DNA of 62,286 bases, filler included, from Callorhinchus milii (GCF_018977255.1; 3 parts of 3 records of this genome joined end to end with filler, not necessarily neighbours in it), one strand, 5' to 3'. Positions 1-30,226 are shown, numbered from the whole stretch's first letter. Program-made: numbers and translations. The notes: generated by a model not told the origin, from the sequence alone.

Positions 1-432
1 GGTTCTGGACCCAGATTGGCAGTTTGAGCTCACATTATATCGGAGATAACGCTTCAATTGTTACATTAACTGAAACTATGTCAGTTGTATTCTCGCTTCC
101 AAATTAAACCGAAATAAATGAGCATATTTCTCTTAACAAAATGTATCACATTTATTACCGCAGTGAGATCCACATAAAGGCGGCTACTTATTTTGGAGAA
201 TGTCAACACATGTAAAAAGTGACACAAATAATGTTTCTTGAGTAATCTAAATTTTGTGCCAATCATCTTTTAGACACGGTTTTTACACGTCAACTGAAGC
301 AGCAACGGTGTATGTCAGGAAAGTATGTCATTTGCAACAGGAAACACCTGTTATTGCTGCCAAGGAAGTTAGTTACAGAAAGGAACGTGACAAGTTATGT
401 CAGTCGCAGCTCATGTTATAATATTTCTTAGT

Positions 433-446
433 GCGACATCTGCTGG
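433..446 (-). promoter_or_regulatory. CTCF core motif CCAGCAGATGTCGC (one mismatch) in the F1 downstream module
   Basis: Compared by eye to CCASYAGRKGGCRS. Binding not shown. Confidence 0.55.
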
Positions 447-813
447 TGGATTGGAGCTACAGCATGTGTACATTTGTAGACAGTTGATAGCAAAAAGTTT
501 TCGGCCCGTCACAACTTTCCCGTTATGAATTTCACGACGTAAATTCAAGTTAAAGTTTCTTATTTATTATTACTTTTTCAAATAGCAAAGGAAGACACTT
601 CCATGTGCAGATCTCCGCAGAATGCAAAATATATGAAGTTATTTATGTGAAAATAACATGATCGTACTTAATAATAATAAGTATCGTTGCATTTAATACA
701 GTGCAAAATCAGATCTTCGAAACGCCACAAAACACTTTGCCGTGAATCGAACCCACGTATCTTGCTTGCTTGGTTGCTTTCGATGCGAGCGCTATAAACA
801 TTTAGCTACAGGC

Positions 814-852
814 AGTTCTTGTAGGGCGGAATCGCTGATCTGTACCTCTGTG
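814..852 (-). other. 23-spacer RSS (CACAGAG / ACAAGAACT)
   Basis: Heptamer 846-852, 23-nt spacer, nonamer 814-822. Confidence 0.92.
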
Positions 853-1992
853 GGGCTCAGTGCACAGTAATACTCCGCAGAGTCCGTAACTCTCACTTGC
901 GATATATTTAATGGGACGGTTCTCTCCCCTTTAGACACATTCGTGGAGAAACGTCCTTTTGCGAAGTCCGCGTGGTCCGGGAACTTGTTGCTGCTGTCTG
1001 TTCTTAGGATATATTCTGGAGCTTTATTGGGATAGTGACGGTACCAGAACAGATAGGGATCGCTGGTGCTTGTAGCTGTGTAATTACACTGCAGATAAAC
1101 ATTCTCCCCTTCATTCACTGTCAGAGTAGATTGCAGCTGTGTCACAGAATCTCCTCCACTATGTCCTGGGAAAGAGAAACACATCAGCGTTTAACAGCAA
1201 TAATAAAAATAATAATAATAACATGAATAATTATTGGATTTGATATAGCCCCTAATCACATGGTTGCGGTGTCTGCAAATGGTGCACATAATACACTTTT
1301 ACTTTGCAATTTGTGGGCGACACGTGGCAGTTAATTGCGCACAGCATTCACCCACAAACAGTAATGGAATGATTGACAGCATTTTTATTGTTAATATAAG
1401 TATACATTTTTTTGAAGGATTATTTACAAACGAAATATATTCCAACAATCGATTAACAAACGTGTATCTACTGACTTCTGGGCAAACAGAGTGTGTGTTT
1501 GTGGTGTAAGGTAACTTGCATAGGGTTTCGCCCTGTCTCGCCCGGGAATCGAAACCAGGTCATCTCGCTGACGAGACCAGTTCCTTGTCCGCTGAGCTAG
1601 AATTCTCCATGAGGCAGGTAGCGTATTGGTTATTTTATACAACAAACATAGGAACATACGAACAGAGAAATCAGGAACAGGAGTAGGCCCGTCGGACTCT
1701 CCAGCCTGCCTAGCCATTCAATAATATCATGACTGATCTTCTAACCTAACTCCATCTGCACTCCTGATCCCCATATCCCTTAAACCCTCTATCCTTTAGA
1801 AATCTATCAATCTCAGTCTTGAACCTGTAGATGGACTAAGCATCTACAGCCTTCTGCAGTAGAGAACTTCATAAATTCCATAAATAAACATAAGCATTTG
1901 ATAATATGTACAGGAAACAGGCTGATAGAGTTAGTTTATCGCTTACCTGATAAGGAAATGATGGTTGCTACCACATAGATATACATTATCAT
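853..1992 (-). CDS. TCR alpha/delta-type V segment, family F1, open (leader 1947-1992; V exon 853-1165)
   Basis: Leader MIMYIYVVATIISLS-G with GTAAG donor and CCCAG acceptor. Ig V-set hallmarks: DSVTQ...LQCNY, WYRHYP, DSAEYYCALSP. Followed by a 23-spacer RSS. Confidence 0.93.
1645..1880 (-). mobile_element. CR1-type LINE 3' end in the leader intron of the first F1 V
   Basis: Minus strand encodes ...FKTEIDRFLKDRGFKGYGDQ..WS*, a typical CR1 ORF2 C-terminus, followed by a tail. Absent from the other F1 introns. Confidence 0.75.
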
Positions 1993-3663: not shown

Positions 3664-3702
3664 TGTTTTTGTACAGGTCCCTCATGGATACACAGCACTG
3701 TG
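3664..3702 (-). other. 23-spacer RSS (CACAGTG / ACAAAAACA)
   Basis: Heptamer 3696-3702, nonamer 3664-3672. Confidence 0.93.
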
Positions 3703-4163: not shown

Positions 4164-5726
4164 TCTCAACTGCCGTCGATTCACGTCAATATCTTCGGTT
4201 GAAATGCAACGAAGAATTACCTAAACGTAGTGTTTGGCTGATAAACGTTTGTCCATTGGAGGAGTTGTCTCTTGTCTCCGCGTCATTATCTTGTCTCTGT
4301 TCATTGCTGGAGGTGTATTGCGACTCCTACTACCGTTTATGTTCAGATTCCCTTCACCTCGCTATGGCAAACTATAGTAATGTGTGAAAGACACAGTGCT
4401 GAGAGACCGAGTTAGAATGACTGAAATGATACTTCTCGAATTGTTTCACAGAATATACTGTAAAATTGATTGACTCTGTATTTCTAGAGCGAAGCCAATT
4501 GGGAACAATTGTATCGCACAAAGAATCGTGGATTGAATAACCAATTTATTATAATTTATTTTCAAAGTATTGTAAAAGCGATCCGCCAACCGACTACTGA
4601 ACATGTTCGTCCTAATCTGAGTGCTAAGCAGTGGTGTGTGGAGCAAGGAAACCTGCCCAAAATTTCGCGCTGACGAGAATGGAAACGACATCTCCTGATT
4701 GCGAAGTGTGGGCTCTAACAACGGAGATATTGGATCCAGGTGTCCTGAGCAAAGACTTCGATAAATCGAATACTTGCAGGAACAGCGAATGAGAGAACTG
4801 ATGGTGAAGGGAATGAGATAGATATGTCCTCAAGATTGTGCAGTGAACAAGTGTAGAATTTTTAGGATATAAGAAAGAGCTTCCCCAGGAACTGTGAAAC
4901 CAGAAGAGTCAGAGAATCCTGAAGCACCATTACATGGTGTGGACAGATTACCTACAATTTGTAATGAACTTTGATTCCTATACTGTAACTTTCTAGAACA
5001 TCCTTTGTTCAGAATGGGAAGTATAAAACAAGGAACGGGACGAGGTTTACAAGCTTCTGAAAACGATTGGAAGTGAGTCCTGGAATGTGCGTTATTGAAC
5101 CACTTTTCATCTGCCATTCAGCCAGTGATGTCTCGTCAAAATATCAGCGCACCCGCGCAATCAGTAGTCAGAATCCGCAATATATTCCTCAAGCTGGTGC
5201 CAAAATAATCATATTAATCATAATCTTAATGCTTGCATTTAATACAGAGTCTTGTCATACAATTGAGATGACTCCGGGCTATATTGCACAGTGTAGCGAC
5301 CGTGATTTTAGGGTTCATAACGTGGTAGTCTGTTGAGTAAAATCATTGTTGTTAATATCATGTTCTAAGGGATTATTACTCCAGGAAAAGCGATTGGCCA
5401 ATCGACTGACAACCGTGTTCCAACTTCTGCTGGGTATACAGAGGCATGTGTGTGGAGCAAAGAAACTTACACATCGTTTGCTTCCGACCGAGAATCGGAC
5501 CACGGTCTTCTCGCTTGCGCAGTGAATATCTAACTAACACACTGATGCATCTCGACATATTTCACTGATTTATTGCAATGATCACATGTTAAGCGTTGCT
5601 TGCATTCTACAAATCATGGATTTCAAACTCAAGCAATATTTCTCCATGAGTTTCGAAACGGCTTGAAAGATTTTCCCTATATTTAAGCAGATATAAAAGT
5701 TGTTTTATTTTTGCTTTAATGCAACG

Positions 5727-5740
5727 TCGCCCCCTCGCGT
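5727..5740 (-). promoter_or_regulatory. CTCF-like motif ACGCGAGGGGGCGA, 23 bp 3' of the F3 nonamer
   Basis: Retains the central AGGGGGCG. A positional homologue exists at 25992-26005. Confidence 0.45.
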
Positions 5741-5763
5741 AAAACAGCATATTAACCTGTTCA

Positions 5764-6660: not shown

Positions 6661-6906
6661 CCCCGCCCACAAAGAGAGCCCGGCCCACACAGTCATTGCC
6701 ACGCCCACAAATCTACGTCGCTCAATCACTGCCCCGCCCACACAGAGCCCCGCCCACACAGTCACTGCCACGCATACAGAGCTACGTCAATCAGCCACTG
6801 CCCCGCCCGCACTGAGCCCCGCCCACACAGCCACCGCCACTTCCACAGAGCTACGTCACTCAGTCGCTGCCCCGCCCGCACTGAGCCGCATCGCCCAATC
6901 ACTGCC
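6661..6906. repeat. About 3.5 copies of a ~69-bp GC-box/CRE-containing tandem repeat in the F3 promoter region
   Basis: Unit GCCCCGCCCACACAGAGCCCCGCCCACACAGTCACTGCCACGCCCACAGAGCTACGTCACTCAGTCACT, starting ~80 bp upstream of the leader ATG. Confidence 0.85.
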
Positions 6907-8182
6907 GTTGCATTACTCCGCCCACCCACACAGAGCTCCGCCCCCTCCACTCCCACCACACAAACACACGAAGTGCCACACAATCAGGTCATTCAATTCA
7001 CAACAATGTTGGGCCGCTGTTTTACACAGTTGGCTACCAAGTTTGGCCCACATATTCTAACGACCCATCCAAACCATCCCCCCTCCACCCCACACGCCAC
7101 TCTCACCCACTCTCACAGTGCCGCAAATTAAGGGAACTCAAACCACAACATTTTGTGGGATACTGCTGTAATCAATTGGCATAAAAAAATATAGTCACTA
7201 CACTTTTCAGCGTTTTCTGTGAAGTGCTCTGAGACGTCTCAATGACATAATATTGCAGTATATCAAATGCAACTTTTGCTTTTATTATCGTTATGATTAC
7301 AATGTTGAATAAGATATGCCCTTACTAATGTTTTTAGTGTTCGGGTTCAGAAATGCTTTTATCAAATACAGCCTTGTCGTTTAGTCGATACGCCTCTAAC
7401 CTCCTCAAACAATTTGTATGCAACACTTTCCTACGAACAGCTATGAATGAAAGATGAATTTAACTGATGGAAAGTCTGTCCAGACACCGGTTGAAAACTT
7501 TCTCGAGCATTGCAATGGCATCACTATAGTCCCTTCATGCAAGCCGCCTGGGCCTGGGTTTAATATCTCCTCGGTAGGACAAGCTTCACCAACAATACTG
7601 ACAGCCAGGCCTGCTCTAGAGTGTCAGACCAGAACAGCAGAACATAATCCAATCTGTATTTCACAGTGAGCAGTTTGGTCGCTTTTGAATGTTTCAGTTG
7701 CGGGATGACATATCAATGATCTTTTTAAATTGCATAGTAATAAACGTATTAAATAGCTCAATGTTCACGTTTAATGTCGTTGCCTGAACAAACTGTGAGG
7801 AGCAGATTTTTTTTTCACACTGTCAGTGGTTCTGATCTTGAATGCATTGCCTGAAAGGTTGGCAGAAGCCGATACTGTAAACAAATGTCAACAGAGAATT
7901 GCTATACCGCAGAAAAAACAATTTAAGAGCGGCTGCTAATCGAAAGTAAAGGCAATAATAGAAAATAGGTGAGATAGAAATTGTTTCATGAGCAACCTAG
8001 GCCTTGTATTAATACTTTAGGCAAATATTTGTAAATAACTGTTGAAGCAGCAATAGTGTGTGAGTGAAATATGTCAACTGCAACAGGAAGCACCTGTTAC
8101 TGCTGCAAATGAAGGTAGTTACACAAAGGCGCGTGACGTGTTATGTGAGTTGCAGCTCATGTTATTTGTGTTTTTATTTAGT

Positions 8183-8196
8183 GCGCCATCTGCTGG
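8183..8196 (-). promoter_or_regulatory. CTCF core motif CCAGCAGATGGCGC (perfect match)
   Basis: 14/14 match to CCASYAGRKGGCRS. Confidence 0.7.
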
Positions 8197-9554
8197 TGGA
8201 TTATAGCTACAACACGTACACAATAGGAGAGGTTTCATAGCATAATTATTTTGGACCCGTCTTGCCTTTCCTTGGTGCTATCTTCTCCACAGGATGTTTG
8301 TGCATTAGTCTAATTTCCCTGCTCGTTCCCCTTATTTTCTATTCCTCTCTGGAACATTCGGATATTCGGTGTCATTCACATTCTTTTACATTGACGTGTC
8401 TCTCTGCTAACACTTGCTGTGCCACTTGCTCCTCCATTTCTATTCATTTCCTTGCCTTATTATTTCGTCGATTATATCGTTTGACTGAACAATTAACTGA
8501 CTTGGAGCATTTTGCACCAGAGTGACAACATATTGACACTTATTCAATCAGTTCACATCAGGACTTCGTCGCAAGTCAAATGTGCTCACTAGACTTTAAA
8601 TGAAATGTAATGTTCATTCTTCTTTAACTTCAATACACTAAATTGTTTCGTTTCTTTAGTGACTCGCCAAGACGCTCCCATACGTGGAAAGCGCTAACTA
8701 GGAATAGGAGCAGACCATCAGGTCCTTGAGTTTGTTCCAACGTTATATTACATCATGGCTGATTTATCTCTCAACACATATTCTAATCTTTTCTCCGTAA
8801 CCCTTGAAATTCTGAACTAAAATGAATGTATCCAACTAAGTCGGCAAAATATGAATGGAACCAACCTCTCCAGATTCCTTGTGGAAGTTTTCCAGGTTTC
8901 CTTAAATTTTTCGTAATTTTTTCCTACCATTTTTCTGCTAACTGGACTGGCTCTAATACACCCTTATTCTGCATTTCCCCAAAAGCCAGAAGTAACAGTT
9001 TCTCTATAGATAGAGGAAATAGTTTTTGTTTAAGCAATATAAAAGGAAATTGTTTGCTTTGATGTTTACTTACTTACTAATGCAGCATAGTAAGAATATT
9101 GCACATGGCAGCGCTCCCCAGAATGCAAGACATTTTTAAATATTACTGGAATGATAACATGACTACAGTTAATAACAACAATAATAATAGTTGCATTTGA
9201 TACAGCGCCATATCACATCTTCGAGACGCCACTCAGTGCTTCATTCAATATGCAGTAAACGAATTGACTGCATAGTGTGAGGGCGAAGCACGGCAGCACA
9301 TTGTATATATCGGTGTCTCATTGGATGAAGTGACCAATTTATTATCAACACTATTATTCAGAAGGAATTATTGACTCTGAAAAATCGATACTCCAAACGA
9401 TTAACAACCTGCTTCCTATTTGCTGCTGGTAACCAGAGCCCAGTGTGTGGAATAAGGAAAGTTGCGCAATGATTCGTACTGCAGGTCATTGAACCAACGT
9501 CTATCGCTTGTGAGGCAAGTGCTGTAACCACTGAGCCACAGGACCCCACATGGC

Positions 9555-9593
9555 AGTTTTTGTAGGGCGGAACCGCTGATCTGTGCCTCTGTG
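9555..9593 (-). other. 23-spacer RSS (CACAGAG / ACAAAAACT)
   Basis: Heptamer 9587-9593, nonamer 9555-9563. Confidence 0.93.
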
Positions 9594-10440
9594 GGGCTCA
9601 GTGCACAGTAATACCCCGCGGAGTCTGTAACTCTCACTTGCAATATATTTAATGGGACGGTTCTCTCCGCTTTAGACACATTCGTTGAGAAACGTTCTTC
9701 TGCAAAGTCCGCGCCGTTCTTGATCCTGTTGTTGGTGTCTGTGCTAAGGATATATTCTGGAGATTTGTTGGGAAAGTGACGGTACCAGAACAGATAGGTA
9801 TTGTATTCGCTTGTAGCTGTATAATTGCACTGCAGGTAAACATCCTCCCCTTCAGTCACTGTCACAGTAGATTGGAGCTGTGTTACAGCGTCTCCTCCAC
9901 AATGTCCTGGGAACCAGACCCATATCAGCGTTCAATACCATAACAATAATCATCATACAAATTATTGCTTTTCATACAGCGCCATACTACATCATTGCGT
10001 CTCCAAATGCTTCATAGAATATTCTGAGAATGTGTATTGTGTGGGCGACAGTGGCAGCAAATTGCGCACAGCATTTTCCTAATAAAAATTCATGGAATGA
10101 CTGATAGCATTATTATCACTCGTACCCGTTAAGAGATTATTAACACCGAAAACTGATCCGACGATCGACCAACGAACGGGTACCTACATATCTCGATGTA
10201 CAAAGTGGTGCGTGTGTGGAGGAAGGAAACTTGCCTGAGGTTTCGCTATGTCCAAGCCGGGAACTAAACCCAAGTCAACACGTTTGCTGCAGGAATGCAT
10301 GAGTCGTGTACCGTATTGGTTATGTAATGCAAAATATATATTCATTGGATAATATGCACATGAAGCAGACTAATAGAGCGAGTTTGTCGCTTACCTGACA
10401 AGGTAATGATCACTGCTACCACATAGACATACATTGTCAT
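9594..10440 (-). CDS. V segment, family F1, open (leader 10395-10440; V exon 9594-9906)
   Basis: Leader MTMYVYVVAVIITLS-G. V exon LQCNY...WYRHFP...DSAGYYCALSP. Canonical splice sites and 23-RSS. Confidence 0.93.
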
Positions 10441-11140
10441 ATGTATTAATGTCACGGGACGTTGTGAGAGCGTTGAGGGTGGAGTTGGAGAAAGTTGGCT
10501 GGGAGGATGTAAGATACCGTGAGGAGAGCTAAATAGGAAATAACATACAGAAGTTGTCATATTCTGTGAGGGAGCAGGTCTGAATGTTATGTACAAACCT
10601 TGTGTCTCTGTCGTTGTGCGTCACCTTCTCTGCTCTGCCATCTCACTCATCCAATGGTTCTCTTCCACCAGTGACATGTCTTTGTAGAGCAGTGTGTCTG
10701 CACACAGTTACACCCATATTCCAGTTCACGAAAACACATACATCAGTTCCACACATATATGCCATCTTCGCGTGTAAATGTGCCTATGGAAACGATTTTT
10801 TTCTTTCCCCCTGGAGGAACGCATAGTGTTTGCTTAATTTAACAGACTACTGGTGCTGACAGGCAAGAGACAAGATTTGGTGAGGTATATCTATTTTGGG
10901 CTCCATTCTGGTACATTAGTTCGCTTTTGTTGTTATGTTCAACCGCTGTCTGCTGGCAGGAAAAAGCGTTTTTTTCTAAAGAAACCGGTTCCCCTAGCTT
11001 GCAAAACGACTGCTTAATCCCATGCACAACAAGACAGCACAGCCTGTTTACACCACTCTCCTTGTTATCATTGTATAACCGCATCAGTTTGTTGAAAGCA
11101 CCAAATTAAATGTGTGAGCGGAAGTCATGACTTTCTGCTG

Positions 11141-11179
11141 AGTTTTTGTACGGGGTATGTGCCTTCCTGTAACAGTGTG
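11141..11179 (-). other. 23-spacer RSS (CACACTG / ACAAAAACT)
   Basis: Heptamer 11173-11179, nonamer 11141-11149. Confidence 0.92.
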
Positions 11180-12364
11180 GGCTCCAGGGCACAGTAATAC
11201 AGTGAGTAATAATAATTACAGTGAGTGCGATGCCCAGTCACAGCATTACAGTGAGTGCGAAGCCCAGTCAAAACATTACAGCATTTGTGGAGTCCTGTAG
11301 CTCAGTGGTTAGAGCACTCGCTTTGCAAGTGAGAGACCCGAGTTCAATTCCAGGCAGAGGGCGAAACCTTGGGAAAGTTTACTTACTCCACACAGAGCTT
11401 AATAATAATCCCTCGAATAAACCAACAACAATAATAAATTGGTCATTTTCAATCTACGACTGTTTGTGGGACATTGCTGTGCGCAATTGGCTGCCGCGTT
11501 CGCCCACAAATATACAGTCAATTCACTTTACAGTGTGTTCTGTGAAGCGCTTTGGGACGTCCTCCCGACGTGAAAAGCGCTATATCAAATGCAAGGATTA
11601 TTATTATTATTATTAATACACAGTGCTGTCACCCACAACAGCCCCGAGTATCTGCAGCTTAGTTACTTTATTCTTCTTGATCAGCTCAGCAGTGAATCGT
11701 TCAGGTAGATCAGGAGATTTGTCAACCGTTCCAGAGGTAAATATCTTGAGCGCGTATTGAAGAGCTCCGCCGGGGTTTTGCCTGTACCAGAAGACAGTGT
11801 CCAATCTTGAAATATTGCAGTTTAGTATCACGTCTTGCCCTTCAATTTCTGTTTTCTCGCGAGGATATTGTGATACAACATCTTGCCCGCTAACTTCTGC
11901 AAAAGCAACAACAACACATTTTTCCGAGCAACTTAAAATTTGCTTTTATCCACTTTATGGAGCACGTTACCGGACAGTACATCAGTCTCAAAGAAACCAC
12001 AGAATATATTGCAAAGCGAATTGATTATATTTTTGCGAAACTGAGCAGACAAAACCGCAGTATTTCACCGATATTATTGTAATATTATACGATAATGGGT
12101 TATTGACCTCCGATAGCGATCGGGGAATCGACTATCAACATGTTTCCTACATAATGCTGTGGAAACAGATTGGTGAGGTGTGAGCAAACGCATTGAAAGG
12201 TTTCATTGCCTGCAATCAAACTCGGGTTCTCTCGCTGGTGAGGCGACCTCTCTAAACATTATGCTTCGGAATTTTATGATGTAAAAATCATGCACTGTGC
12301 ATGTCCACACATACTTACTGGCTATGGTGAGGATTGCTATCAGTAACTGGCAGAGAGCTGTCAT
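11180..12364 (-). pseudogene. V segment, family F4, split by a SINE insertion in the YYC motif (leader 12319-12364; V exon 11180-11896 including 419-bp insert)
   Basis: Leader MTALCQLLIAILTIA. Exon reads ILNC...WYRQNP...DSTVY and is then interrupted; the remainder YCALEP and the RSS lie at 11141-11200. 7-bp TSD TAATACA at 11195-11201 and 11614-11620. Confidence 0.9.
11285..11613 (+). mobile_element. Young tRNA-headed SINE (DeuSINE-like body, L2-like tail, (ATT)n end)
   Basis: A box TAGCTCAGTGG, B box GAGTTCAATTC. Body CTGTTTGTGGGACATTGCTGTGCGCAATTGGCTGCCGCGTT recalls the AmnSINE1/SacSINE1 domain (from memory). Flanked by a TSD. Confidence 0.88.
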
Positions 12365-13576
12365 GTTGGCTGCTGAGGTGTGGACAGATAATGGGATCTC
12401 TTCCTTTGTATATCGCTGTGTTGCTGCTTCAGCGACAACTTGTGAGGCAGCGGCTGATCTGACGTGTTGGATGGTTTATTTTGTACAATTGTAGGCGTTT
12501 CCCACTAACCAGAGGAACTTGAACTTGATCTGCTGGCGATTGGGAGCCAATGGGTCTGGGCTTGGATGGGAACATTGACAAACTTTTCATCCAATGTCAT
12601 TTCCCTTACAATGTATCATGTGAACCGCTTTGCGATGTCTGTAAGATGTGATCAGTCACTACATCAAATGAAAACGTTATTTTTATTTAAAACTTTATTA
12701 TTAAAGTGATTGCATTCGTTAAGTTGATGAATGGTTGAGACATGCAGCAGAGACTGAAGGGATAAAAGTTTACGTTCTGACATCAAGGCTGAGGTGACAA
12801 CATTTCTCTGTTGATGTTACTTTCTCCTGTGAGGATCACGAAGTTGATCTGCCGCGGATTGAAGGCGAGAGGTTCTGGGCCAGGATGTGAGTAGTCGCGT
12901 TTCACCCACTCACAATTTTGTTTTAAAGTATATTCTTTGAAGCGCTTTCAGACGCCTCCATGACGCAATATGGTTCCATATCAAATGCTCATTTTTATTT
13001 TCATTATTGATCTGAATGCATTCACTTGGTTGGTTTTGAACCAAGCAGCCCAGCTTTAGAAAAAAGTTTACTTTCTATCATCGTGGCTGAGGTGAAAATC
13101 TGCCTCTGTTACCGGTACTTGTTGTTATGAGTCTGAATGTTGTTGGTTTTGCACCCAGTTCGGCAGTTTCAGCTCACAGGCTATACGAGATAGTTCTTGA
13201 CTTCTTAAATTAACATGAACTAGGGCGGTTGTAATCTCTTTTTCAAACAAAACCAATATCAATGACCGTATTGTTCTTTACAAAAAATAACACATTTATT
13301 ACCGCAGTGAGATCCACATAAAGGCCGCTGCTTATGTGGCAGAAATACAACACATATAAAAAGTGACACAACTGATGCTTCTCGAGCAATGTAAGTTTTG
13401 TGCTAATCATTTTTCAGACAAGATTTTTACACTTCAGCTGAAGCAGCAACAGTGTTTATGAGTGAACTATGTCAACTGTAACAAGAAGCACCTGTTATTG
13501 CTGCCAAGTATGTTGGCTGCAGAAAGGAATGTGACAAGTTATGTCAGTCGGAGCTCATGTTATATATCTTTCCAAT

Positions 13577-13590
13577 GCGATATCTGCTGG
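13577..13590 (-). promoter_or_regulatory. Degenerate CTCF core CCAGCAGATATCGC
   Basis: Two mismatches; same module and position as the other copies. Confidence 0.4.
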
Positions 13591-13755
13591 CGGATTGCAG
13601 CTACAGCTTTTGTGCATTTGGAGACAGTTGATAGCAAACAGTTTTCGGCCCGTCATAACTTTCCCGTTATGAATTTCACTACGTAAATGCAAGTTAAGGT
13701 TTCTTATTTTTTACCCTTTTTTCAAAGAACAGGTGAAGACACTTCAACGTGCAGG

Positions 13756-14087
13756 TAATAATAATAATAATAATAATAATCCTTGCATTTGATATAGCGC
13801 TTTTCACGTCGGGAGGACGTCCCAAAGTGCTTCACTGAACATAATGTAAAGTGAATTGACTGTATATTTGTGGGCGAACGCGGCAGCCAATTGCGCACAG
13901 CAATGTCCCACAAACAGTCATGGATTGAAAATGAGCAATTTATTATTGTTTTTGGTTTTGGAGGGATTATTATTAGGCTCTGTGTGGAGTAAGGAAACTT
14001 GCCCAAGGTTTCGCCCTCTGCCTGGAATTGAACTCAGGTCTCTCAATTGCAAAGCGAGTGCTCTAACCACTGAGCTACAGGTCTCCC
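13756..14087 (-). mobile_element. Young SINE copy, near-identical to 11285-11613
   Basis: Reverse-complement match. Absent at the paralogous sites (~605 and ~20430). Confidence 0.88.
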
Positions 14088-14289: not shown

Positions 14290-14328
14290 AGTTTTTGTAG
14301 GGCAGAGCCGCTGATCTGTGCCTCTGTG
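14290..14328 (-). other. 23-spacer RSS (CACAGAG / ACAAAAACT)
   Basis: Heptamer 14322-14328, nonamer 14290-14298. Confidence 0.93.
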
Positions 14329-15135
14329 GGGCTCAGTGCACAGTAGTACGCCGCGGAGTCTGCAACTCTCACTTGGGCTATACTTAGTCGGACGGTTCTA
14401 CGACTTTCATCCAGTTTCGTTGAGAAACGTTCTTTTGCAAAGTCTGCATGTTGCGGTTGACCCCTGCTGTATGTCCAAAGGATATATTCTGGAGCTCTGT
14501 TGGGATAGTGACGGTACCAGAACAGATAGGGAGTGTTGCTTGTTGTTGTGTAATTACACTGCAGACTAACATCCTCTCCTTCATTCACTGTTAAAGCAGA
14601 TTCGAGCTGTGTCACCGAATCACCTCCACAATATCCTGGGAAACAGACACAATGCAACAACATTCAATACAATAATTATAATCACGTTGATAAAGCTATC
14701 AATTCATATAGCGACTTATCACAGCTTGGAGACGTCCAAGCGCTTCATGTCATTCACATTAAGTGTATTTTCTGGGCAAAGCACCGCATCGTATGCGCAC
14801 AGAAGTAACCGCTAACGAGTTCTGGATGGCGAGCACATATTATCACAGGTAATATATTTTTAAGGGATTATCACACCACAAAAGGCATCTGCGGATCGAC
14901 TTATTATCGGAAGCCCACGTACTGACAGGTCAACACCGGCGTGTGTGTGGAGTAAGGATACTTGCCAAAGGTTTTAACCTGTGCCGCTAGTCGACCGCCA
15001 AAGCCCTGCAGCATATTGGTTATTGTATGCAATAAAACATAAGCATTGGATTTTATTTGCAGGGACCAGACTTAACGAGTGAGTTTACCGCTTACCTGAT
15101 AAGGTAATGATCACTGCTGCCACATAGAGATACAT
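14329..15135 (-). CDS. V segment, family F1, open (leader 15096-15135; V exon 14329-14635)
   Basis: The first leader ATG is mutated (TCG); the second ATG gives MYLYVAAVIITLS-G. V exon ends DSAAYYCALSP, followed by a 23-RSS. Confidence 0.9.
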
Positions 15136-19166: not shown

Positions 19167-20256
19167 GTTGGCTGCTGAGTTGTGGACAGACAATCGGATC
19201 TCTTCCTTTGTATATCGCTGTGTTGCTGCTTCAGTGACAAGTTGTGAGGCAGCGGCTGATCTGACGTGTTCAGTGGTTTATTACCTCCAATTGTAGGCGT
19301 TTCCCACTCACCAGAGTATCATAAATTTGATCTTCTGGCGATTGGTAGCCAATGAGCCTGGGATTGGATGGGAGCAACGACTCGCCTTTCACCCACAAAG
19401 AATGTAATATACGTTATATTCTGTGATGCTATTTGAGACGTCTCGAATAGTAATGAGTCGCTGTATAAAGTGAAAAGTCTACTATCATTGCTATGATTGC
19501 TTTAGTTTGGCAGATTTTGAAGAAAGCAGTCTCACCTAAGCCATTAAAGCTTTCATTTCTATCATCGAGGCTAAGGTGACAACCTTTCTCTGTTGATGGT
19601 AGTTTCTATTGTGAGTCAGAATGTTGTTGGTTCAGGAGACAAGTCGGCACTTTGAGCTCAGTGTCTACGTTATGAATATTCGTGGGGAAATTAATGCGTG
19701 AGTATTGCTTTTTTTGTTTTGGCTCACAATGTGCAGTCACTGCTTCTTACAGAAATGCCATTTAAAGTCTTGGAACCGCATCCAACGTGAAAAGAGCTGT
19801 ACCAAAGGCAAGGTTATTGTTATTATTATTATTGTTATCGATGGCCAAACCTTCTTATCATTGCATCAAAACAAGGAATCTGCAAACTGAGATACCTAAA
19901 CCATATTAAACAAAGTCAGCTTTAATCTTCTTCTGCATTGAAACCAAAACAAGCGAACATATTGCTGCTAACAAAATGAAGCACATTTGTTCCCGAAATG
20001 AGAACTATTAAGTGCGGCTGCTTACTTGGGAGAAAGACAATAAAGCATAGAATCAGAAATTTAAATTGCTTCTTGAGTAACCTAAGGCCACGCCGTAGGC
20101 AAATCTTTGTAAATTACAGTTGATCCAGTAACAGTGTATAAGATGGAAGTATGTCACCTGTAACAGGAAGCAATCTGTTATTGCTGACAAGTCAATTAGT
20201 TACAGAAAGGAACCTGACAAGTTATCTGAGTTGCAGCTCAGCTTATATATTTTGGT

Positions 20257-20270
20257 GCACCATCTGCTGG
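20257..20270 (-). promoter_or_regulatory. CTCF core motif CCAGCAGATGGTGC (one mismatch)
   Basis: 13/14 match to consensus. Confidence 0.6.
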
Positions 20271-20849
20271 TGGATTGCAGCTAAAGCACGTGCACAGTTG
20301 GAGGCATTTGAAAGCAAATAGTTCGCAGCCAATCTTTTCTTTCCCAGTTGTGAATGTTGCTGTATAAAAGAAAGTTGTTGTTTCGGATGAACGTCTACTT
20401 ATTTAAACAGCACAGATGGACATGCACACGTGGCGAGACTCCCAGGAAAGCAAGACGTTTGAAGTTATTTATGTGAATGTAGCATTATTATATTTAATAA
20501 TGATAATAACATTCATTGCAGTAATTCACTTGGTATCGCGCCATATCTCGTATTCAAGACACTTCAAATCGCTTCACAGAATAGACTGTACACGAGTTGA
20601 CTGCATATTGTGTGGGTGAAACGCGGCAGCCAATTGCTCACATCAGTGTCCCACTGGATTGAGTGCACACTTCAGTATTAATATTATTGTTTTGAAGAAG
20701 TAATTACTTCTGGGAAATCGATTCGCCAATCAAATAACAACCGGGTTCCTTCTTTTACTGCTCGTTGAACAGAGTTGTTCGTGGAATAAGGAAACGTGCA
20801 CAAAGCGAGGCGAATCCTCTCTCTACTGAGCTACAGGACTCCACCTGAC

Positions 20850-20888
20850 AGTTTTTGTAGGGAGGAATCGTTGATCTGTGCCTCTGTG
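20850..20888 (-). other. 23-spacer RSS (CACAGAG / ACAAAAACT)
   Basis: Heptamer 20882-20888, nonamer 20850-20858. Confidence 0.93.
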
Positions 20889-21742
20889 GGGCTCAGTGCA
20901 CAGTAATACCCCGCGGAGTCTGTAAGTCTCACTTGGGATATATTCAAGTGAACGGCTCTCTCCTCGTTGGACACATTCGTTGAGAAACGTTCTTTTGCAA
21001 AGTCTGCACGTTGCTGCTTGTTATTCCTGATGTAGGTATTAAGGATATATTCTGGAGCTGTATTGGCATAATGACGGTACCAGAACAGATATGTATCGCT
21101 GCCGCTTGTAGCTGTGTAGTTACACTGCAGATAAACAGCCTCTCCTTCATTCACTGTCACAGTAGCCTGGAGCTGTGTCACAGAGTCTCCTCCACAATAT
21201 CCTAAGAACAAGACAGAAATCAGCGTTCAATACAACAACAACCTTAATAATAATACTATTACCTCTATTTGATACGACTCATCGTGTCTTCGAAACATTA
21301 CAAAGTACTTCACGGAAAACACTTTAACTGTATTTCTTCGGCCAATGCAGCTCCCAGTTATGCAGCAGCCCACAAACAGTCGTGGTTTGATTGAATGAAT
21401 CGTGAACAAAATCGTAGGGATTTTCCTACCATGAAAATCCATTCGCAAATTCACTTACAACGGATTCCTACAGCTATTGAAACAGAGTCGTGTGTTCGTT
21501 GTAACCAAATTCCCCTGAGGTTTCTCCCTGCCCAGGAATCAAACCCAGGTCCTCTCTCTTGCGATGCGAGTGCTATATCAACTGAGCTACAGGACACTAT
21601 AACGCCACAATTCTGTAGCGTTTTGCTTATCTAATGCAAGAAAATAGGCATTGGACAATATCTGCGGGATAGAGATTCTTGAGCTTGATGGCTTACCTGA
21701 CAAGATAACGATGGCGGCTGCCACGTAGATATACATTGTCAT
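20889..21742 (-). CDS. V segment, family F1, open (leader 21697-21742; V exon 20889-21201)
   Basis: Leader MTMYIYVAAAIVILS-G. V exon ends DSAGYYCALSP, followed by a 23-RSS. Confidence 0.93.
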
Positions 21743-22124: not shown

Positions 22125-22568
22125 CTTGACCTCTTCTCTTTGACGAGCCTTCATCTCCCTCTCCCCTCCCCCCCCTCCCCCCTCCCCTGACATTTCCTCG
22201 CTCCCTTCCTCATCACCTGACAATTTCCTCGCTCCTACTCTCAGGCATCTCCTCGCTCACTGACATCTCCTCGCTCCCTCACCTGACATCTCCTCCTCGT
22301 CCTTTCCTCACCCTGACTTTTCCTCGTCCACTTCGCTTCACCTGATTTTCTCCTCGTCCTTTCCTTCACCTGACCATCTTCTCGTCCTCTTCCTCCTCAC
22401 CTGACATTTCTCGTCCTCTTCCTCCTCACCTGACCTTTCCTCTCGCTCCACCTTCGCTCCTCACCTACTTTTTGCTCGGATCATGAAACTGTGCAGCGCT
22501 TGGATGTCTCTGAGTGAAGGCGCTTTATAAATGGAATCCTGTTGTTGTTGTTGTTGTTGTTGTTGTTG
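22125..22568 (+). mobile_element. L2-type LINE 3' end with an expanded internal ~20-bp repeat and (GTT)n tail
   Basis: CTTCTCTTTGACGAGCC (LF..AF-like end of ORF2), CCTCACCTGAC repeats, tail GCAGCGCTTGGATG...GGCGCTTTATAAATGGAATCC(TGT)n. Confidence 0.7.
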
Positions 22569-23995: not shown

Positions 23996-24455
23996 CCTTC
24001 CGCACAGAAGTAAGTGGCGGTGTCTGTCACTCGCAGGTCTTGGATTGTTAGAGTGCAGTTTCTCTGTCTTGTATTAGCCAAAGCGCTTATCCTGTCATTC
24101 TCACTGATGTCTCTTGTTCCCCAAACCAAGAACCGGATGGAGCCGTTTCCATACTGTGTGTACCAATGAAAGGTTGGGCCGGGCACAGTGGTGTTGCACT
24201 CCATAGATACGTTTCCATTTTCATTCCCTGTCACGGCCTGAGGTGACTGTGAAACGTCACTTTCAGCCAAGGCACCTGGAAAGAAGGCAGAAATGAACAT
24301 ACTCGCAAAGGAATTAGGATAGTGTCTGGCCGCGATAAACTGTAATTATTTTGCAGGTAAAAAAGATTTTTTTTATACAAATTCATACACTACTTACACC
24401 AAAGCTTTGTTGTTAAATTCAAAATAATATACGTTGCGCTGAAATTCTGCTTCAT
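23996..24455 (-). CDS. V segment, family F2, open (leader 24398-24455; V exon 23996-24275)
   Basis: Leader MKQNFSATYIILNLTTKLW-C. V exon ends DTATYFCAEG, followed by a 23-RSS. Confidence 0.9.
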
Positions 24456-25134
24456 TCTCGACTCTCTTCGATTCACGTCAATATAACCTGATGAATTGCA
24501 ACCAGAAATCATCTAAAGTCAACGACTGGTGGATAAACGTTGGTTCACTTGAGACGTTGACTCTTATTCCCGCGTCATTACTCTGTCTCTGTTCATTGCT
24601 GGAGATGTATTGCGACTCCTCCTATCTTTTATGTTCAGATTCCCTCCGCCTCGCAGTGGCAAACCACAGTAATGTGTGAAAGAGACAGTGTAGAGGGAGC
24701 GAGTTACAAAGACTGAAGCAGATAAAGGTAAAAATAACAATAACCCATATAACGCCTTATCTCGTCATTGAGAGGTCTTAAAGCGCTTCATGGAGTATAC
24801 TGTAAAGTTTATTGACTGCATAAGTTGTGGGACAGTGCGGCAGATAATTACGAACATACGTCGCCCACAAATACTTGTGGGTTGAATGACTTACTTAGCC
24901 CTTTTTTAAGGAAATGTTACCAGTGAAATCTATCAGCCATCTGAGTAGCAACCGGGTTACTATTCACTGCAATGTTAAACCAAACCGTGTGGAGTCAGGA
25001 TAAGTGCCGAAAAATTTTGCCCGAATAAGAATCGAACCGATGTCTCCTTCTTGCGAGGCGAGTGCTCTAACCACTGAGCTATACATCCAGATGTCCTGAG
25101 GAATGAGCCCAGATCTTGATAATAATAATTATTA

Positions 25135-25357: not shown

Positions 25358-25991
25358 TAATGATGGTTATATTTATGATTGCATTTGATAAAGCGCCGTA
25401 TAGTGCCATTGGGACGACAGAAAGCGTTTCGCAGAATATTATGTGCTGCGTTATGATGTACAGAGATTACTGGAGGCGAAGCGCGTCGTCTACTGGACCC
25501 GATTATTCATATTTTCAGTGACCAACTTGCTGTTATTTTTTTAAGGGATTATTAATTCTGTAAAAGCGATCAGCCAAGAGACTATCAACCGTGTTCCTGC
25601 TTCTGCGAGAAAGACAGAGGCAAAATAAAAATGATGTTATGTTATATTATGTATCGCAACGACATTGTGATTGTGACAGTTGAAACGTGACAGTCTATTG
25701 CACACAAAGAGTAAACGATTGAGCTACCAAACTGTTGTTATAATTTTCAAAGAATTGTTAATCCTGGAAAAGCGTTACGCTGATGGAATTCCAACCGTGT
25801 TCCAACAACTGATAGGAAGGCAGAGGTATGTGAGTGGAGCAAAGACATTTGCCCAATGTTTCGTCCCACCTGGGAATTCGTACCCAGTTCTTCACGCTTG
25901 GGAACTGAATTAGCTGAAGTCAAACCAATATAACACAGGACTCTGTGAGTAAACAGACATAAATGCTGTTTTAATTTTGCTTTATGCAATG

Positions 25992-26005
25992 GCTCCCGCT
26001 GGCGG
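25992..26005 (-). promoter_or_regulatory. CTCF-like motif CCGCCAGCGGGAGC, 24 bp 3' of the F3 pseudogene nonamer
   Basis: Aligns without gaps to 5727-5740. The two copies together imply CCGC(C/G)AGGGGGCGC. Confidence 0.35.
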
Positions 26006-26029
26006 TTCAGTAGCAAATGAACCGGTTGC

Positions 26030-26832: not shown

Positions 26833-26911
26833 GAGCACCTGATCCCGTGTCTGACATTAACTCCCCAATGTGGATTGATGGGGCTTTTGGGCTCAGTAGC
26901 CACACAGTCAC

Positions 26912-27159
26912 AGCCCCGCCCACACACAGAGCCCCGAACAGACAGCCACTGCCACGCCCACAGAGCTACGTCACTCAGTCACTGCCCCGCCCACACAGAG
27001 CCCCGCCCACACAGCCACTGCCACGCCCACATAGCTGCGTCACTCAGTCATTGCCCCGCCCACACATAGCCCCGCCCACGCTGCCACTGCCTCGCTCACA
27101 GTGCTACGTCACTCAGTCGCTGCCCCGCCCGCACTGAGCCGCATCGCCCAATCACTGCC
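26912..27159. repeat. Paralogous ~70-bp GC-box/CRE tandem repeat in the second F3 promoter
   Basis: Same unit, copy number and position as 6661-6906. Confidence 0.85.
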
Positions 27160-27529
27160 AACAACAACAACAACAACAACAAGATTCCATTTATAGAGCG
27201 CCTTTCACGTCAGGAGGACGTCCCAAGGCGCTGCACAGTTGGGTCATGACCCGAGCAGGGGGAAATGGTCAGGGTGAGGGGAGGGAAGGGAGGGAGAGAG
27301 GAGGGGGGAAATGGTCAGGGTGAGGGGAGGAAGGGAGGGAGCGAGGAGGAGGAAGAGAGTCGAGAGGGGAGCTGAAGGCACGGTCAAAGAGAAAGGTTTT
27401 GAGACCGGCCTTCAAGGAGGAAAGGGAGGAAGCGGCGAAGGCACTGGGGGATGGAGTTCCAGAGCCTCGGGGCTGAGAGGCTGAAGGCCCGACCACCGAT
27501 AGTAGGGCGGTTGGGGCGGGGGACGTGGA
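27160..27529 (-). mobile_element. 5'-truncated L2-type LINE
   Basis: Encodes HVPRPNRPTIGGRAFSLSAPRLWNSIPQCL...SLSSLKAGLKTFLFDRAF, a classic L2 ORF2 C-terminus, with a (GTT)n tail. Absent from the paralogous site at ~6906; flanked by GCC on both sides. Confidence 0.85.
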
Positions 27530-28864
27530 GCCGTTGTTTTACTGCGCCCCGCCCACACAGCGCCCCGCCCCCTAAACCACCCCCACAGGAACACACAGTG
27601 CCACAAAATCAGGTCAATCAATCCACAACAATGTGTGGGCCACTGTTTTACACAGTTGGCTACCACGTTTGGCCCACACAATACAATCTAACGCCCCATC
27701 CCCACCCTCTCCCCCGCTCCAGCTCACCCCCACACTCTCCCACACACACAGTGCCACAAAATAAGGCAACTCAACCCACAACTTTGTGTGGGACACAGCT
27801 GTACACAATTGGCATAAAAGAGTTTAGTACTCCACTTTTCAGCGTATTCTGTGACGAGCTTTGAGACGTCTCAATGACTTAATATGACACTATATCAAAT
27901 GCAACCTTAGTCATTATTATCGATATTGTTACAATATTGAATAAGTCACGACCTTACAATTGTGTTGGTTATTCGTGTTTGAGAAACGCTTTTATCGAAC
28001 ACAGTCTTGTCATTTCGTCGATTCGCCTTAAACCTCCTCGAAGGTTTTAATGTCGAATACAGAGGCAGATTGTTCGTCAACTTGGCATCCAATTCGTGTA
28101 CAACAATGTTCCACAAACAGCTATGAATGAAAGACGAATTTTACCGATAGAAAGTCTGTCCAGACATCGGTAGAAACCTTGTCTTTCTCGAGCAGTTCTA
28201 TGGCATCATTATAGTCCATTCAGGCAAGAGGTCTGGACCTCGGTTTAGTATCTCCTCGGTAGGATAAGCTTCACCGACAATACAGACAGCCAGGCCTGCT
28301 CTAGAGTGTCAGCCCAGAACATCAGAACATAATCCAATATATATTACCCAGTGAGCACTTCGGTGGCTTTTCAATGTTTCAGTTGCGTGATGAAATACGA
28401 AAGATTTTTTTAATTATAGTTTATAGTAATAAACGTCTTAAATAGATTAATATTTACGTTTAATGATGTTGCCTGAATAAGCATTGAGGAGGGGAGAAGT
28501 ATTTTTCCACACAGCGAGTTGTTCTGATCTATAACGCATTGTCTGAAAGGTTGGCAGAAGCCGATAATATAACAACTTTCATGAGAGAATTGCAATACAG
28601 TAGAGAATAAAATTTATCAGCGGCTGCTGCTTGGGAAAAGGGAACAATATGTGAGATACAAATTATTTCCTGAGCAACCTAAGCCTTGTGTTAATACTTT
28701 AGGCAAATATTTGTAAATTACATTTGAAGCAGCAATAGTGTGTATGAGTGAACTTTGTCAACCACAACAGGAAGCACCTGTTACTGCTGCAAAGGAAAGT
28801 CGTTACCGAAAGGAGCGTGACAAGTTATGTATGTTGCAGCTCATGTTGCATGTGTCTGTTTAGT

Positions 28865-28878
28865 GCGCCATCTGCTGG
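28865..28878 (-). promoter_or_regulatory. CTCF core motif CCAGCAGATGGCGC (perfect match)
   Basis: 14/14 match to consensus. Confidence 0.7.
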
Positions 28879-30226
28879 TGGATTGTAGCTACAGCACGTG
28901 TGCAATTGGAGAGGTTTCGAAGCATATTTGCTATGGTCCCGACTTGCCTTTCTTTGGTGCTGTCTTCTCCACTGAAATTTTATACATTAGTCTCATCTCC
29001 CCTCTCGTTCCTCATATTTTCTGGTCTTCCCTGGAGCATTCGACCATTCGATGTCATTCACATTTCCTTAATTTGACGTGTCTCTGTGCAAACACTTGCT
29101 CCTCCAATTTAATTCAATTCACTAACTTTTTACTTCATCGATTATAATATTTGACTGAACACTTCGCTGACGTATAGCATTTTAAAACAGAGTAACATCA
29201 GAGGGGCATTCAGGTAAATCCGTTCGTGTCAGGCGGACGTCCCGAGGCAAATGTGCTCAATAAACTTAAAATGAAAGTTAAAATTCATCCTTCTTCAACG
29301 TAAATTCCCCAAATTGGTTTCTTTCTTTTTTGATTCACCAAGACGTTCCCCAACGTGTAAAGCGCTAAATAGTAATAGGATCAGACCATCAGCTCCTTGA
29401 GCCTGTTCCAACATTATATTACATCATGGCTGATTTATCTCTCAACACACATTCCAACCTTTTCTCCGTATTCCTTGAATTTCTGAGCTAAAATAAATAT
29501 ATCCAACTCAGTTTGGAAAATATGAATGGAACCAACCCCTCCAGATTCTTTGTGGAAGTTTTCCAGATTTCCTTAAAATTTTCGTAATTTTTTCCTGCCA
29601 ATTTTTCTGCTAACTGGCCTGGCTCCAATGCACCCTTATTCTGCATTCCCCCAACAGCCAGAAGGAACAGTTTGTCTATAGATAGCGGAAATAGTTTTTG
29701 TGTAAGCAATATAAACGGAAATTGTTTGTTTTAATGTTTACTTACTTATCAATGCAGCATAGAAAGAATCGTACATGTGGCAGCGCTCCCCAGAAAGCAA
29801 GACATTTTTAATTACCTCATTGATGATAGCATGACTACAGTTAATAACAATAATAATAATAGTTGCATTTGATATAGCGCCGTATCACATCTTCGAGGCG
29901 CCACTCAGTGCTTCATTCAATGTACAGTAAACGAATTGACTGCATATTGTGAGTGCGAAGCACGGCAGGAAATTGTACATATCGGTGACTCATTGGATGA
30001 AGTGACCAAATTATTATTAACACTATTATTCAGATGGAATTATTGCCACTGAAAAATCGATACTCCAATCGATTAACAACCTGCTGCCTATTTACTGCTG
30101 GTAACCAGAGACTAGTGTGTGGAATAAGGAAAGTTGCACAATGATTCGTTCTGCAGGTCATTGAACCAACGTCTATCGCTTGTAAGGCGAGTGCTGTAAC
30201 CACTGAGACACAGGACACCACATGGC

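Follow-up and report, generated by a model that had tools for sequence, protein, structure and literature searches.

A candidate CTCF-binding element 3' of one V family in a T cell receptor V array of the chimaera Callorhinchus milii

Introduction

Does CTCF-assisted V choice go back as far as V(D)J recombination itself in translocon loci? Oriented CTCF sites within V arrays are central to models in which cohesin loop extrusion brings RAG to distant V segments. In the studies we consulted, the evidence for them is mammalian, coming from mouse, human, chimpanzee, and rabbit (PMC6746451) and again from mouse (PMC5859386), and our literature search found V-array CTCF sites described for no cartilaginous fish. 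In the little skate, which is a cartilaginous fish, matches to the JASPAR CTCF matrix MA0139.1 at a threshold of 8 mark TAD boundaries with an orientation code (PMC10115646). These oriented sites imply loop extrusion and were described as a genome-wide boundary feature in fin tissue; in the accessible part of that study we found no analysis of an antigen-receptor locus. As the orientation code is established in skate (PMC10115646), the general loop-extrusion machinery is expected in a chimaera as well. We examined a V array from Callorhinchus milii, in which a first-pass annotation had noticed CTCF-like motifs behind one family of V segments.

Results

The DNA analyzed belongs to a TCR (alpha/delta-like) V array of the translocon type. 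The window, by which we mean the whole stretch of 62,286 nucleotides, filler included, contains 11 V segments of four families (F1, F2, F3, and F4), all of them on the minus strand, and five of the 11 belong to F1. The F1 V exons with their 23-RSS (CACAGAG-23-ACAAAAACT) are located on that strand at 814..1191 (unit U1; RSS 814-852), 9555..9932 (U2; RSS 9555-9593), 14290..14664 (U3; RSS 14290-14328), 20850..21227 (U4; RSS 20850-20888), and 30227..30607 (U5; RSS 30227-30265), and the units fall into three lineages: A (U1 and U3), B (U2 and U5), and C (U4). The history of U1 is mosaic, indicating that recombination between F1 units occurs. tRNA-derived SINEs are abundant across the window.

A five-unit alignment revealed one block of about 240 bp, also on the minus strand, 3' of each F1 RSS: 280..522 in U1, 8028..8273 in U2, 13424..13666 in U3, 20106..20346 in U4, and 28710..28955 in U5. 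The blocks could be aligned over approximately 240-270 bp with a mean column identity of 79%. From the RSS nonamer to the CTCF 19-mer within the block the distance was 364, 1355, 696, 576, and 1345 bp in U1 to U5, respectively, in agreement with the 0.37-1.36 kb given at the first pass. The annotation had also stated that the sequence between V and block differs between two F1 sub-lineages; it does differ, by SINE insertions and by a segment of about 800 bp in lineage B, but among three lineages rather than two. We propose that F1 expanded through tandem duplication, with each unit comprising promoter and leader, V exon, 23-RSS, and 3' block of about 240 bp, and that later SINE insertions and the indel of about 800 bp would have shifted the block to its present 0.36-1.36 kb from the RSS.

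A search of the window found no homologue of the block behind F2, F3, or F4 V segments and no copy away from F1 V segments. Copy number was estimated as summed word depth in whole-genome contig sets, which was 808/612 and 489/239 for the block (808/612 for the U2 copy), 1118/1030 for the F1 V exon, and 1e5 to 4e6 for SINE bins; the block thus resembles the F1 V exon in copy number and lies 100 to 5000 times under the neighbouring SINEs, with its core covered by about 25 contigs. The block therefore goes with F1 V segments rather than being a transposon spread over the genome; the latter had been named at the first pass as a finding that would refute the proposal. Transposable-element-borne CTCF sites are, nevertheless, well known in mammals, and rodent B2 SINEs, which carry a CTCF motif, offer a model in which an old element piece with such a motif was captured a single time by the ancestral F1 unit and then spread solely through V duplication, whether or not it later acquired a function. 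The richness of the window in tRNA-derived SINEs and the internal inverted repeats present in the block would suit such an origin. As the depth of the block equals that of the F1 V exon rather than that of the SINE bins, no tRNA-like or other Rfam match was found at the block, and its copies in the window lie solely behind F1 V segments, we consider this origin very unlikely.

Each block contains a CTCF core on the minus strand. For scoring we used a hand-entered version of the JASPAR matrix MA0139.1, cross-checked against the published IUPAC consensus CCASYAGRKGGCRS. The 19-mer is CCACCAGCAGATGTCGCAC in U1 (431..449; score 16.3), CCACCAGCAGATGGCGCAC in both U2 (8181..8199; 20.2) and U5 (28863..28881; 20.2), CCGCCAGCAGATATCGCAT in U3 (13575..13593; 8.9), and CCACCAGCAGATGGTGCAC, with CpG changed to TpG, in U4 (20255..20273; 16.3). 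The maximum score is 28.5, and all five copies were above the threshold of 8 used in skate. The 14-mer core CCAGCAGATGGCGC was perfect at 8183-8196 and 28865-28878, had one mismatch at 433-446 and 20257-20270, and had two at 13577-13590, and the IUPAC consensus ranked the copies identically (0, 0, 1, 1, and 2 mismatches). Thus, the five minus-strand cores, two of them perfect, were confirmed at the positions first reported, and the U3 copy was, as predicted, the weakest by both measures. Core matches with at most three mismatches numbered 8 against 1.3 expected, a count reached in 0 of 100 shuffles, and matrix matches scoring at least 14 numbered 4 against 0.26 expected in 31 kb.

Full CTCF sites may include an upstream motif, with a published consensus of CAGCTGTTCC or CTGCAGTTCC-like sequence and a linker of 2-7 bp (PMC12885311). 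The first-pass annotation had described a block of this type just 5' of the core, and we found the upstream-type motif CTGTAGCTNC in each of the five copies, separated from the core by 6 bp on its 5' side (453-461, 8203-8211, 13597-13605, 20277-20285, and 28885-28893 in U1 to U5), where it agrees with CTGCAGTTCC or CAGCTGTTCC at about 7-8 of 10 positions. A search with TGTAGCTNC gave 6 matches, the five block copies included, against 0.31 expected.

All five cores lie on the V sense strand, and the footprint, here meaning upstream motif, linker, and core, therefore points in the direction of V transcription. The D/J/C end, together with any convergent sites there, is outside the window, so that orientation was scored relative to the V sense strand only. 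A strand-bias scan, which had been suggested for the entire scaffold and which we carried out on the window, placed 11 of 12 matrix matches scoring at least 8 on the V sense strand, with a plus-strand maximum of 8.4; the block sites are dense, with one 3' of each F1 RSS and five in all over 31 kb. In mouse, V-region CTCF sites point toward D-J-C without exception in Igh and Tcrb, and in 129/144 cases in Tcra/d (PMC5859386). The orientation of the F1 cores is uniform, as emphasized at the first pass, but tandem duplication copied V and block as a pair, and the uniformity that follows from it is a single event and not five.

Orientation is then no evidence against a rival explanation, in which the block is ordinary flanking DNA copied with F1 V as a neutral passenger, chance produced the CTCF-like motif in the ancestor of the F1 units, and the apparent island of conservation was produced by SINE and indel scrambling of its neighbours together with differing unit ends. 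The rates of change bear directly on this question. Over the five copies, the number of steps per column was 0.26 for both the CTCF 19-mer and the RSS, 0.34 for upstream motif plus core, 0.43 for the V exon, 0.53 for the rest of the block, 0.98 for the post-block flank, and 1.26 for the intron. The slowest 31-column window of block and flank coincided with upstream motif plus core (Poisson p=0.024 versus the rest of the block). To this we added a paralogue comparison of 37 and 43 contigs aligned on the copy at 8135-8262, which are mostly lineage-B relatives at 80% likeness or above and therefore related copies, with allelic contigs counted twice. Positions varying at a share of at least 10% made up 1/31 of the footprint (8181-8211) against 9/25 beside it (Fisher p=0.0019) and 0/19 of the CTCF 19-mer alone (p=0.0098), and from 8181 to 8202 there was no such variant among about 25 contigs. 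A core diverging at the rate of neutral flanks, which would have spoken against the original claim, was thus not what we observed: the core changed more slowly than its flanks by both measures.

Several observations nevertheless fit a neutral passenger. Between lineages the block was 73-76% identical and alignable intron and flank 65-71%, so that the block was only slightly higher; in the recent pairs U1/U3 and U2/U5 there was no excess conservation of the block, and in U1/U3 the core was not better kept than its flanks; the U3 core is decaying (score 8.9) despite an intact V reading frame; and recombination between units, recorded in the mosaic U1, occurs. Against these stand a footprint that changes as slowly as the RSS and is near-invariant in about 25 contigs while adjoining bases vary (p=0.002), a motif scoring at least 14 that is expected only 0.26 times in 31 kb, and the presence of the upstream motif at the right spacing. 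On balance we regard the neutral explanation as unlikely. The block is, from its sequence, probably a V-family-specific CTCF element with neighbouring conserved sequence.

That neighbouring sequence is substantial, since about 150 bp are conserved beyond the CTCF footprint and a bare CTCF site leaves those bases unexplained. By rate per column, the alignment contained a second slow-changing segment, GCAGCA(A/G)TAACAGGTGCTTCCTGTTGCAG, on the minus strand at 8078..8107, with equivalents at 332-361, 13476-13505, 20158-20188, and 28762-28791, which can be read as two sites, an E-box-like CAGGTG and an ETS-like CTTCCTGT. The whole might be an enhancer- or promoter-like element specific to the V family, on the model of V8E, at which E-box, ETS-like, and GGGAA-like sites act through lymphoid factors in local opening or germline or antisense transcription, with the CTCF-like site as a local modulator and not a loop-extrusion anchor. 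Such an element would explain why the 150 bp outside the footprint are also kept, at 0.53 steps per column, with the CAGGTG/CTTCCTGT segment as the second slowest window; it has a precedent in mouse V8E, which is about 200 bp long, family-restricted, located just 3' of the VH8 RSS, and enhancer-active, and in PAIR4, where CTCF is partly a repressor (PMC10390877). However, U4 has a disrupted E-box, U1 and U3 have changes in the ETS-like site, and the slowest part of the block is the CTCF footprint and not these sites. In addition, the RNA runs contained only 0.00-0.01 of the words sampled from a 2-kb stretch including the block. We consider an enhancer- or promoter-like element of this kind quite unlikely.

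The near absence of the 2-kb stretch from the RNA runs also argues against a small structured RNA, or else a short peptide, as the product of the block. RNAalifold did predict a hairpin (GCAGCAATAACAGG...CCTGTT...TGTTGCTGC) in all copies, yet its covariation term was +0.96, a penalty, with compensatory change in 1 of 41 pairs, and Rfam gave no match at E<=1. Open reading frames of at least 80 aa overlap the block only in the lineage-B copies (8262-8525 and 28827-29147). We consider a coding or structured-RNA role extremely unlikely.

Discussion

The most constrained part of the block, 31-35 bp, fits a full CTCF footprint in which the upstream motif would be contacted by zinc fingers 9-11 and, across the 6-bp linker, the core motif by zinc fingers 3-7, and we infer a genuine binding element for CTCF. 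In thymocytes it may play the part that forward CTCF sites play in the V regions of mammalian Igh, Tcrb, and Tcra/d: as cohesin extrudes loops from the J/C side, bound CTCF would stall or stabilize it at the footprint, and the F1 V segments nearby would thereby become more available to the recombination center. Lymphoid-specific accessibility may come in addition from the neighbouring conserved E-box/ETS-like sequence, in the manner of the mouse V8E/PAIR modules. CTCF occupancy, cohesin stalling, and an effect on recombination are predictions from sequence, and to the proposal as a whole, that the F1 block is a genuine CTCF element aiding F1 V recombination via loop extrusion, we give about an even chance.

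The broader statement, that a holocephalan TCR locus uses forward V-attached CTCF elements with a full footprint to guide cohesin-driven V(D)J recombination, is more tentative, and we regard it as possible but doubtful. If true, the folding of translocon antigen-receptor loci under CTCF guidance would belong to jawed vertebrates in common and would not be a mammalian refinement. An origin in the earliest jawed vertebrates cannot be derived from one recently expanded family in one species. What is new here is a concrete set of candidate CTCF sites in a chimaera TCR V array, and the F1 copies, ranging from perfect to decayed cores, form a natural allelic series.

Several known systems resemble the F1 element in part. 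In the mouse Tcra/Tcrd V region, CTCF sites are mostly at or near V promoters, whereas the F1 site is 3' of the RSS. The locus is of the same kind and has many V-region sites, 129/144 of them toward J-C (PMC5859386; Shih et al. 2012 and Chen et al. 2015, as cited there), with ChIP-seq support and the known partners TEA, INT1-2, and EACBE, whereas our view of F1 is limited to the V array. V8E of distal mouse Igh has in common with the F1 block a length of roughly 200 bp, sequence conservation, a position downstream of the RSS, restriction to a single V family, and repetition along with that family (PMC10390877). V8E follows the RSS directly, unlike the F1 block, and in the literature we found no CTCF site reported for it. 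Grouped with V8E in one regulatory module are the PAIR elements, Pax5-activated repeats with a CTCF site (PMC10390877); they are Pax5-dependent and lie kilobases upstream of the VH8 gene, whereas the F1 block lies 3' of the RSS. Neither V8E nor PAIR has sequence homology to the F1 block.

The proximal VH genes of mouse and human have RSS-associated CTCF elements (Jain et al. 2018, as cited in PMC10390877), for which the mouse consensus is GACCAGCAGGGGGC, 17-19 bp from the nonamer (PMC6746451). Common to these and the F1 sites are a V-sense CTCF core 3' of the RSS in one orientation through the array, a similar core sequence (ACCAGCAG..GGC), a presence predicted by V family, and conservation as good as that of the RSS. 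The VH sites are in Igh, whereas the candidate F1 sites are in a TCR locus and embedded in a larger conserved block, and no sequence homology is implied. As the mouse VH spacing is fixed at 17-19 bp and that of F1 varies from 364 to 1355 bp, the F1 sites fall outside the RSS-associated subclass. Only the weak CTCF-motif matches at F3 segments come close to that spacing, at 20-21 bp from the RSS nonamer.

Arrangement of V segments in the array

All V-type gene segments of the 31,190-bp piece (NW_024704849.1) lay on the minus strand. They numbered eleven: five of family F1 (Cys codon regions at 872, 9613, 14348, 20908, and ~30285), three of F2 (3719, 16554, and 24012), two of F3 (5822 and 26088), and one broken segment (~11199). 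No D, J or C elements were found in the window, and an array of V segments without them is a translocon layout. The F1 V segments ended in ...YYCALS followed by a 23-spacer RSS, CACAGAG-23-ACAAAAACT; because of this heptamer and nonamer, a search with the strict RSS consensus gave zero F1 matches. When one F1 V segment was searched against protein entries, the best 15 matches were UniRef entries of Callorhinchus milii with 65-87% identity. A PDB search, swamped for chain assignment by multi-domain antibody constructs, listed among its single V domains TCR V-alpha and V-delta chains (3tf7_C, 3omz_A, 4mng_E). We treat the locus as an elephant shark V array of TCR alpha/delta-like type; the chain label, based on these domains, the CALS motif, the 23-RSS, and the translocon layout, is only moderately secure.

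Several other features of the array were observed. The broken segment is a pseudogene of a fourth V type (11130-11831, minus strand), with FR1-FR3 at 11613-11831 and a YYCALEP end plus 23-RSS at 11130-11199, split by a ~400-bp insertion of a tRNA-derived SINE of very high copy number (summed depth as high as 3.9 million, with an Rfam tRNA match at 11295-11357) that contains a 30-bp tandem repeat at 11215-11281. Upstream of both F3 segments lies a 69-bp GC-rich tandem repeat (6661-6887 and 26901-27140; 3.3-3.4 copies), which contains CCCCGCCC boxes and yields long spurious Pro-/His-rich plus-strand ORFs. A C/T-rich low-complexity stretch at 22157-22466, between the fourth F1 unit and the F2 segment at 24012, shows strong strand skew (GC skew −0.34) and imperfect tandem units of 29-88 bp. 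Within 7900-13890, even seemingly unit-specific parts were covered by ~10 or more contigs at a likeness of at least 80% in whole-genome contig sets, which suggests that the multi-V cassette itself is present many times in the genome.

The block is part of the F1 unit

The minus-strand blocks 3′ of the five F1 RSSs aligned over ~240 bp (280-522, 8028-8273, 13424-13666, 20106-20346, and 28710-28955). In self-comparison the F1 unit ran from a promoter/leader island through intron, V exon, and RSS to the block, and three lineages could be told apart among the five units (U1 to U5): U1 with U3 forms lineage A, U2 with U5 lineage B, and U4 alone lineage C. The distance from the RSS nonamer to the 19-mer that matches the CTCF core was 364, 1355, 696, 576, and 1345 bp, varying through insertions of tRNA-derived SINEs, to which much of the variation was traced, and through an ~800-bp segment that is specific to lineage B. 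We therefore concluded that V and block were duplicated as one, and thus that the five like orientations represent one ancestral arrangement rather than five independent ones. The first-pass annotation had pointed to the uniform orientation of the module; all five copies are indeed alike, but as evidence this counts for less than it had been given.

tRNA-derived SINE heads occur across the array (9474-9545, 14018-14080, 16425-16487, 18136-18205, and 25024-25082); the one at 9474-9545 and its U5 counterpart, both in lineage B, lie only ~9 bp beyond the F1 RSS nonamer on its 3′ side. U1 is a mosaic: its V exon (813-1191) is nearest lineage B (85-87%) and the sequence 3′ of its RSS (280-812) is nearest U3 (80-92%), a pattern that indicates that F1 units have exchanged sequence, by unequal crossing-over or conversion, and that the breakpoint was close to the RSS.

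We considered whether diverged copies of the block lie behind the other V segments. No homologues were found behind F2, F3 or F4 V segments, where local alignments did not rise above shuffled controls, and this possibility was rejected; for the same reason the core matches at 10943-10956 and 25483-25496 (two to three mismatches) are not block remnants. The block is an F1-specific element.

The CTCF core and upstream motif

All five CTCF cores reported in the first-pass annotation were recovered on the minus strand (433-446, 8183-8196, 13577-13590, 20257-20270, and 28865-28878). Two were exact matches to CCAGCAGATGGCGC, two had one mismatch, and that at 13577-13590 had two; a search allowing up to three mismatches gave 8 matches versus 1.3 expected. 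Scored with an approximate version of the JASPAR MA0139.1 matrix (PWM), the 19-mers of U1 to U5 gave 16.3, 20.2, 8.9, 16.3, and 20.2 against a maximum of 28.5, and the five cores ranked identically against CCASYAGRKGGCRS, a published consensus that PMC6746451 quotes. Matches scoring at least 14 numbered 4, versus 0.26 expected from shuffles, and the PWM scan found no plus-strand CTCF-like match above 8.4 anywhere in the window. Each of the five cores is preceded on its 5′ side, at a distance of 6 bp, by a CTGTAGCTNC element. Its proposed reading as a CTCF upstream motif is reasonable, because the motif read by zinc fingers 9-11 is CAGCTGTTCC or CTGCAGTTCC-like with a linker of 2-7 bp (PMC12885311).

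Conservation of the footprint

Parsimony steps per column, counted on the lineage tree for the five window copies, were highest in the intron (1.26), followed by the post-block flank (0.98), the pre-block sequence (0.78), promoter and leader (0.64), the rest of the block (0.53), and the V exon (0.43); the 35 columns of upstream motif plus core, hereafter the footprint, gave 0.34, and both the CTCF 19-mer and the RSS gave 0.26. Within block and flank, the slowest 31-column window coincided exactly with the upstream motif plus core, the second slowest being the CAGGTG/CTTCCTGT segment. Relative to the rest of the block, the footprint had 12 steps in 35 columns (Poisson p=0.024). Between lineages, identity was 65-71% in alignable intron and flank, 73-76% over the whole block, and ~85% on average in the footprint; the whole block is thus only mildly better kept than alignable intron and flank.

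Genome paralogues gave a second comparison, using 37 and 43 contigs at 8135-8262 (~25 across the core), which are related copies, mostly lineage-B-like and with allelic duplicates included. Among variants present in at least 10% of depth, substitutions occurred at 8170, 8172, 8176, 8180, 8203, 8212, 8216, 8218, 8219, and 8225 and indels at 8171, 8174, and 8179; at this threshold, 8181-8202 and the upstream motif's AGCTACA were both free of variants. Variable positions made up 1/31 of the footprint versus 9/25 of adjoining sequence (Fisher p=0.0019), and 0/19 of the 19-mer alone (p=0.0098). In the young pair U1/U3 the footprint was kept no better than the flanks, and the U3 copy had lost two key G's with its V reading frame intact. 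These results suggest that selection maintains the footprint in most copies, on evidence that is moderate rather than conclusive. Of the first-pass interpretation, what holds is a real element attached to one V family, CTCF-type by its motif and probably constrained; the argument from orientation carries less weight than it first seems to.

The block is neither a dispersed repeat nor an RNA gene

The first-pass annotation had considered whether the block might be a genome-wide transposon unrelated to V genes. We compared contigs from two whole-genome-sized runs (X1 and X2) with 7900-13890 at 80% likeness and summed word depth. The block gave depths of 808 (X1) and 612 (X2) at 8100-8299 and 489 and 239 at 13500-13699; the F1 V exon bin gave 1118 and 1030, most bins of other V-cluster DNA ~110-1200 with a few higher, and SINE bins 5e4 to 3.9e6. 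In copy number the block therefore matches the F1 family and not a dispersed repeat, and its reading as a genome-wide transposon was rejected. The block was also rejected as an RNA gene, with zero Rfam matches and an alignment fold lacking covariation; almost none of the block-containing stretch was found in RNA sequencing runs.

A possible role in F1 recombination

Along the V sense strand the motif reads 5′-CCA...GGC-3′ and, by the convergent-loop-anchor convention, points along V transcription. Provided that rearrangement here is by deletion, as the single V orientation suggests, J/C would lie in this direction. In mouse, all bound V-region sites in Igh and Tcrb and 129/144 in Tcra/d point to D-J-C (PMC5859386), and >98% of Igh CTCF sites share one orientation (PMC6746451). 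In mice, according to PMC10390877 (with reference to Jain et al. 2018 and Hill et al. 2020), forward sites stabilise cohesin and allow downstream DNA to be drawn in up to the reverse sites close to the recombination center, and RSS-adjacent CTCF sites raise usage of their own V segment. CTCF-oriented loop extrusion is documented in skate, also with MA0139.1 (PMC10115646). Because of the motif orientation, the mouse V-region parallels, and skate loop extrusion, we propose that the block binds CTCF and includes accessory sequence; CTCF would occupy it, cohesin would stall there, and F1 V segments would be favored in recombination.

As candidate accessory sequence, ~150 bp on the 3′ side of the CTCF footprint is likewise conserved and contains CAGGTG adjoining CTTCCTGT, with GGGAAAG at its 5′ edge. 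We read CAGGTG as a putative E-box-like site, broken in U4, and CTTCCTGT as a putative ETS-like site, altered in U1 and U3.

Our literature search, with incomplete coverage that is no proof of absence, found no report of CTCF sites in cartilaginous-fish antigen-receptor loci. The arrangement may be ancient, as the first-pass annotation suggested, or may be a gain within the chimaera lineage. As proposed, the F1 block would work like mammalian V-region CTCF sites. In layout, a ~240-bp, family-restricted, conserved block 3′ of the RSS, it is closest to mouse V8E, and in combining a CTCF site with other candidate factor sites it is closest to PAIR elements, the same module as V8E (PMC10390877); we neither claim nor expect that it is homologous in sequence to any of them. 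The RSS-associated VH subclass is defined by a spacing of 17-19 bp, whereas the F1 block lies at 364-1355 bp and so falls outside it. Separately, weak CTCF-like matches on the V sense (minus) strand were seen behind F3 segments at 5725-5743 (PWM 11.1; 3′ half AGGGGGCG good, CCA half poor) and 25990-26008 (10.0); the two agree at ~10/15 bases and sit 20-21 bp 3′ of the RSS nonamer, near the mouse VH spacing.
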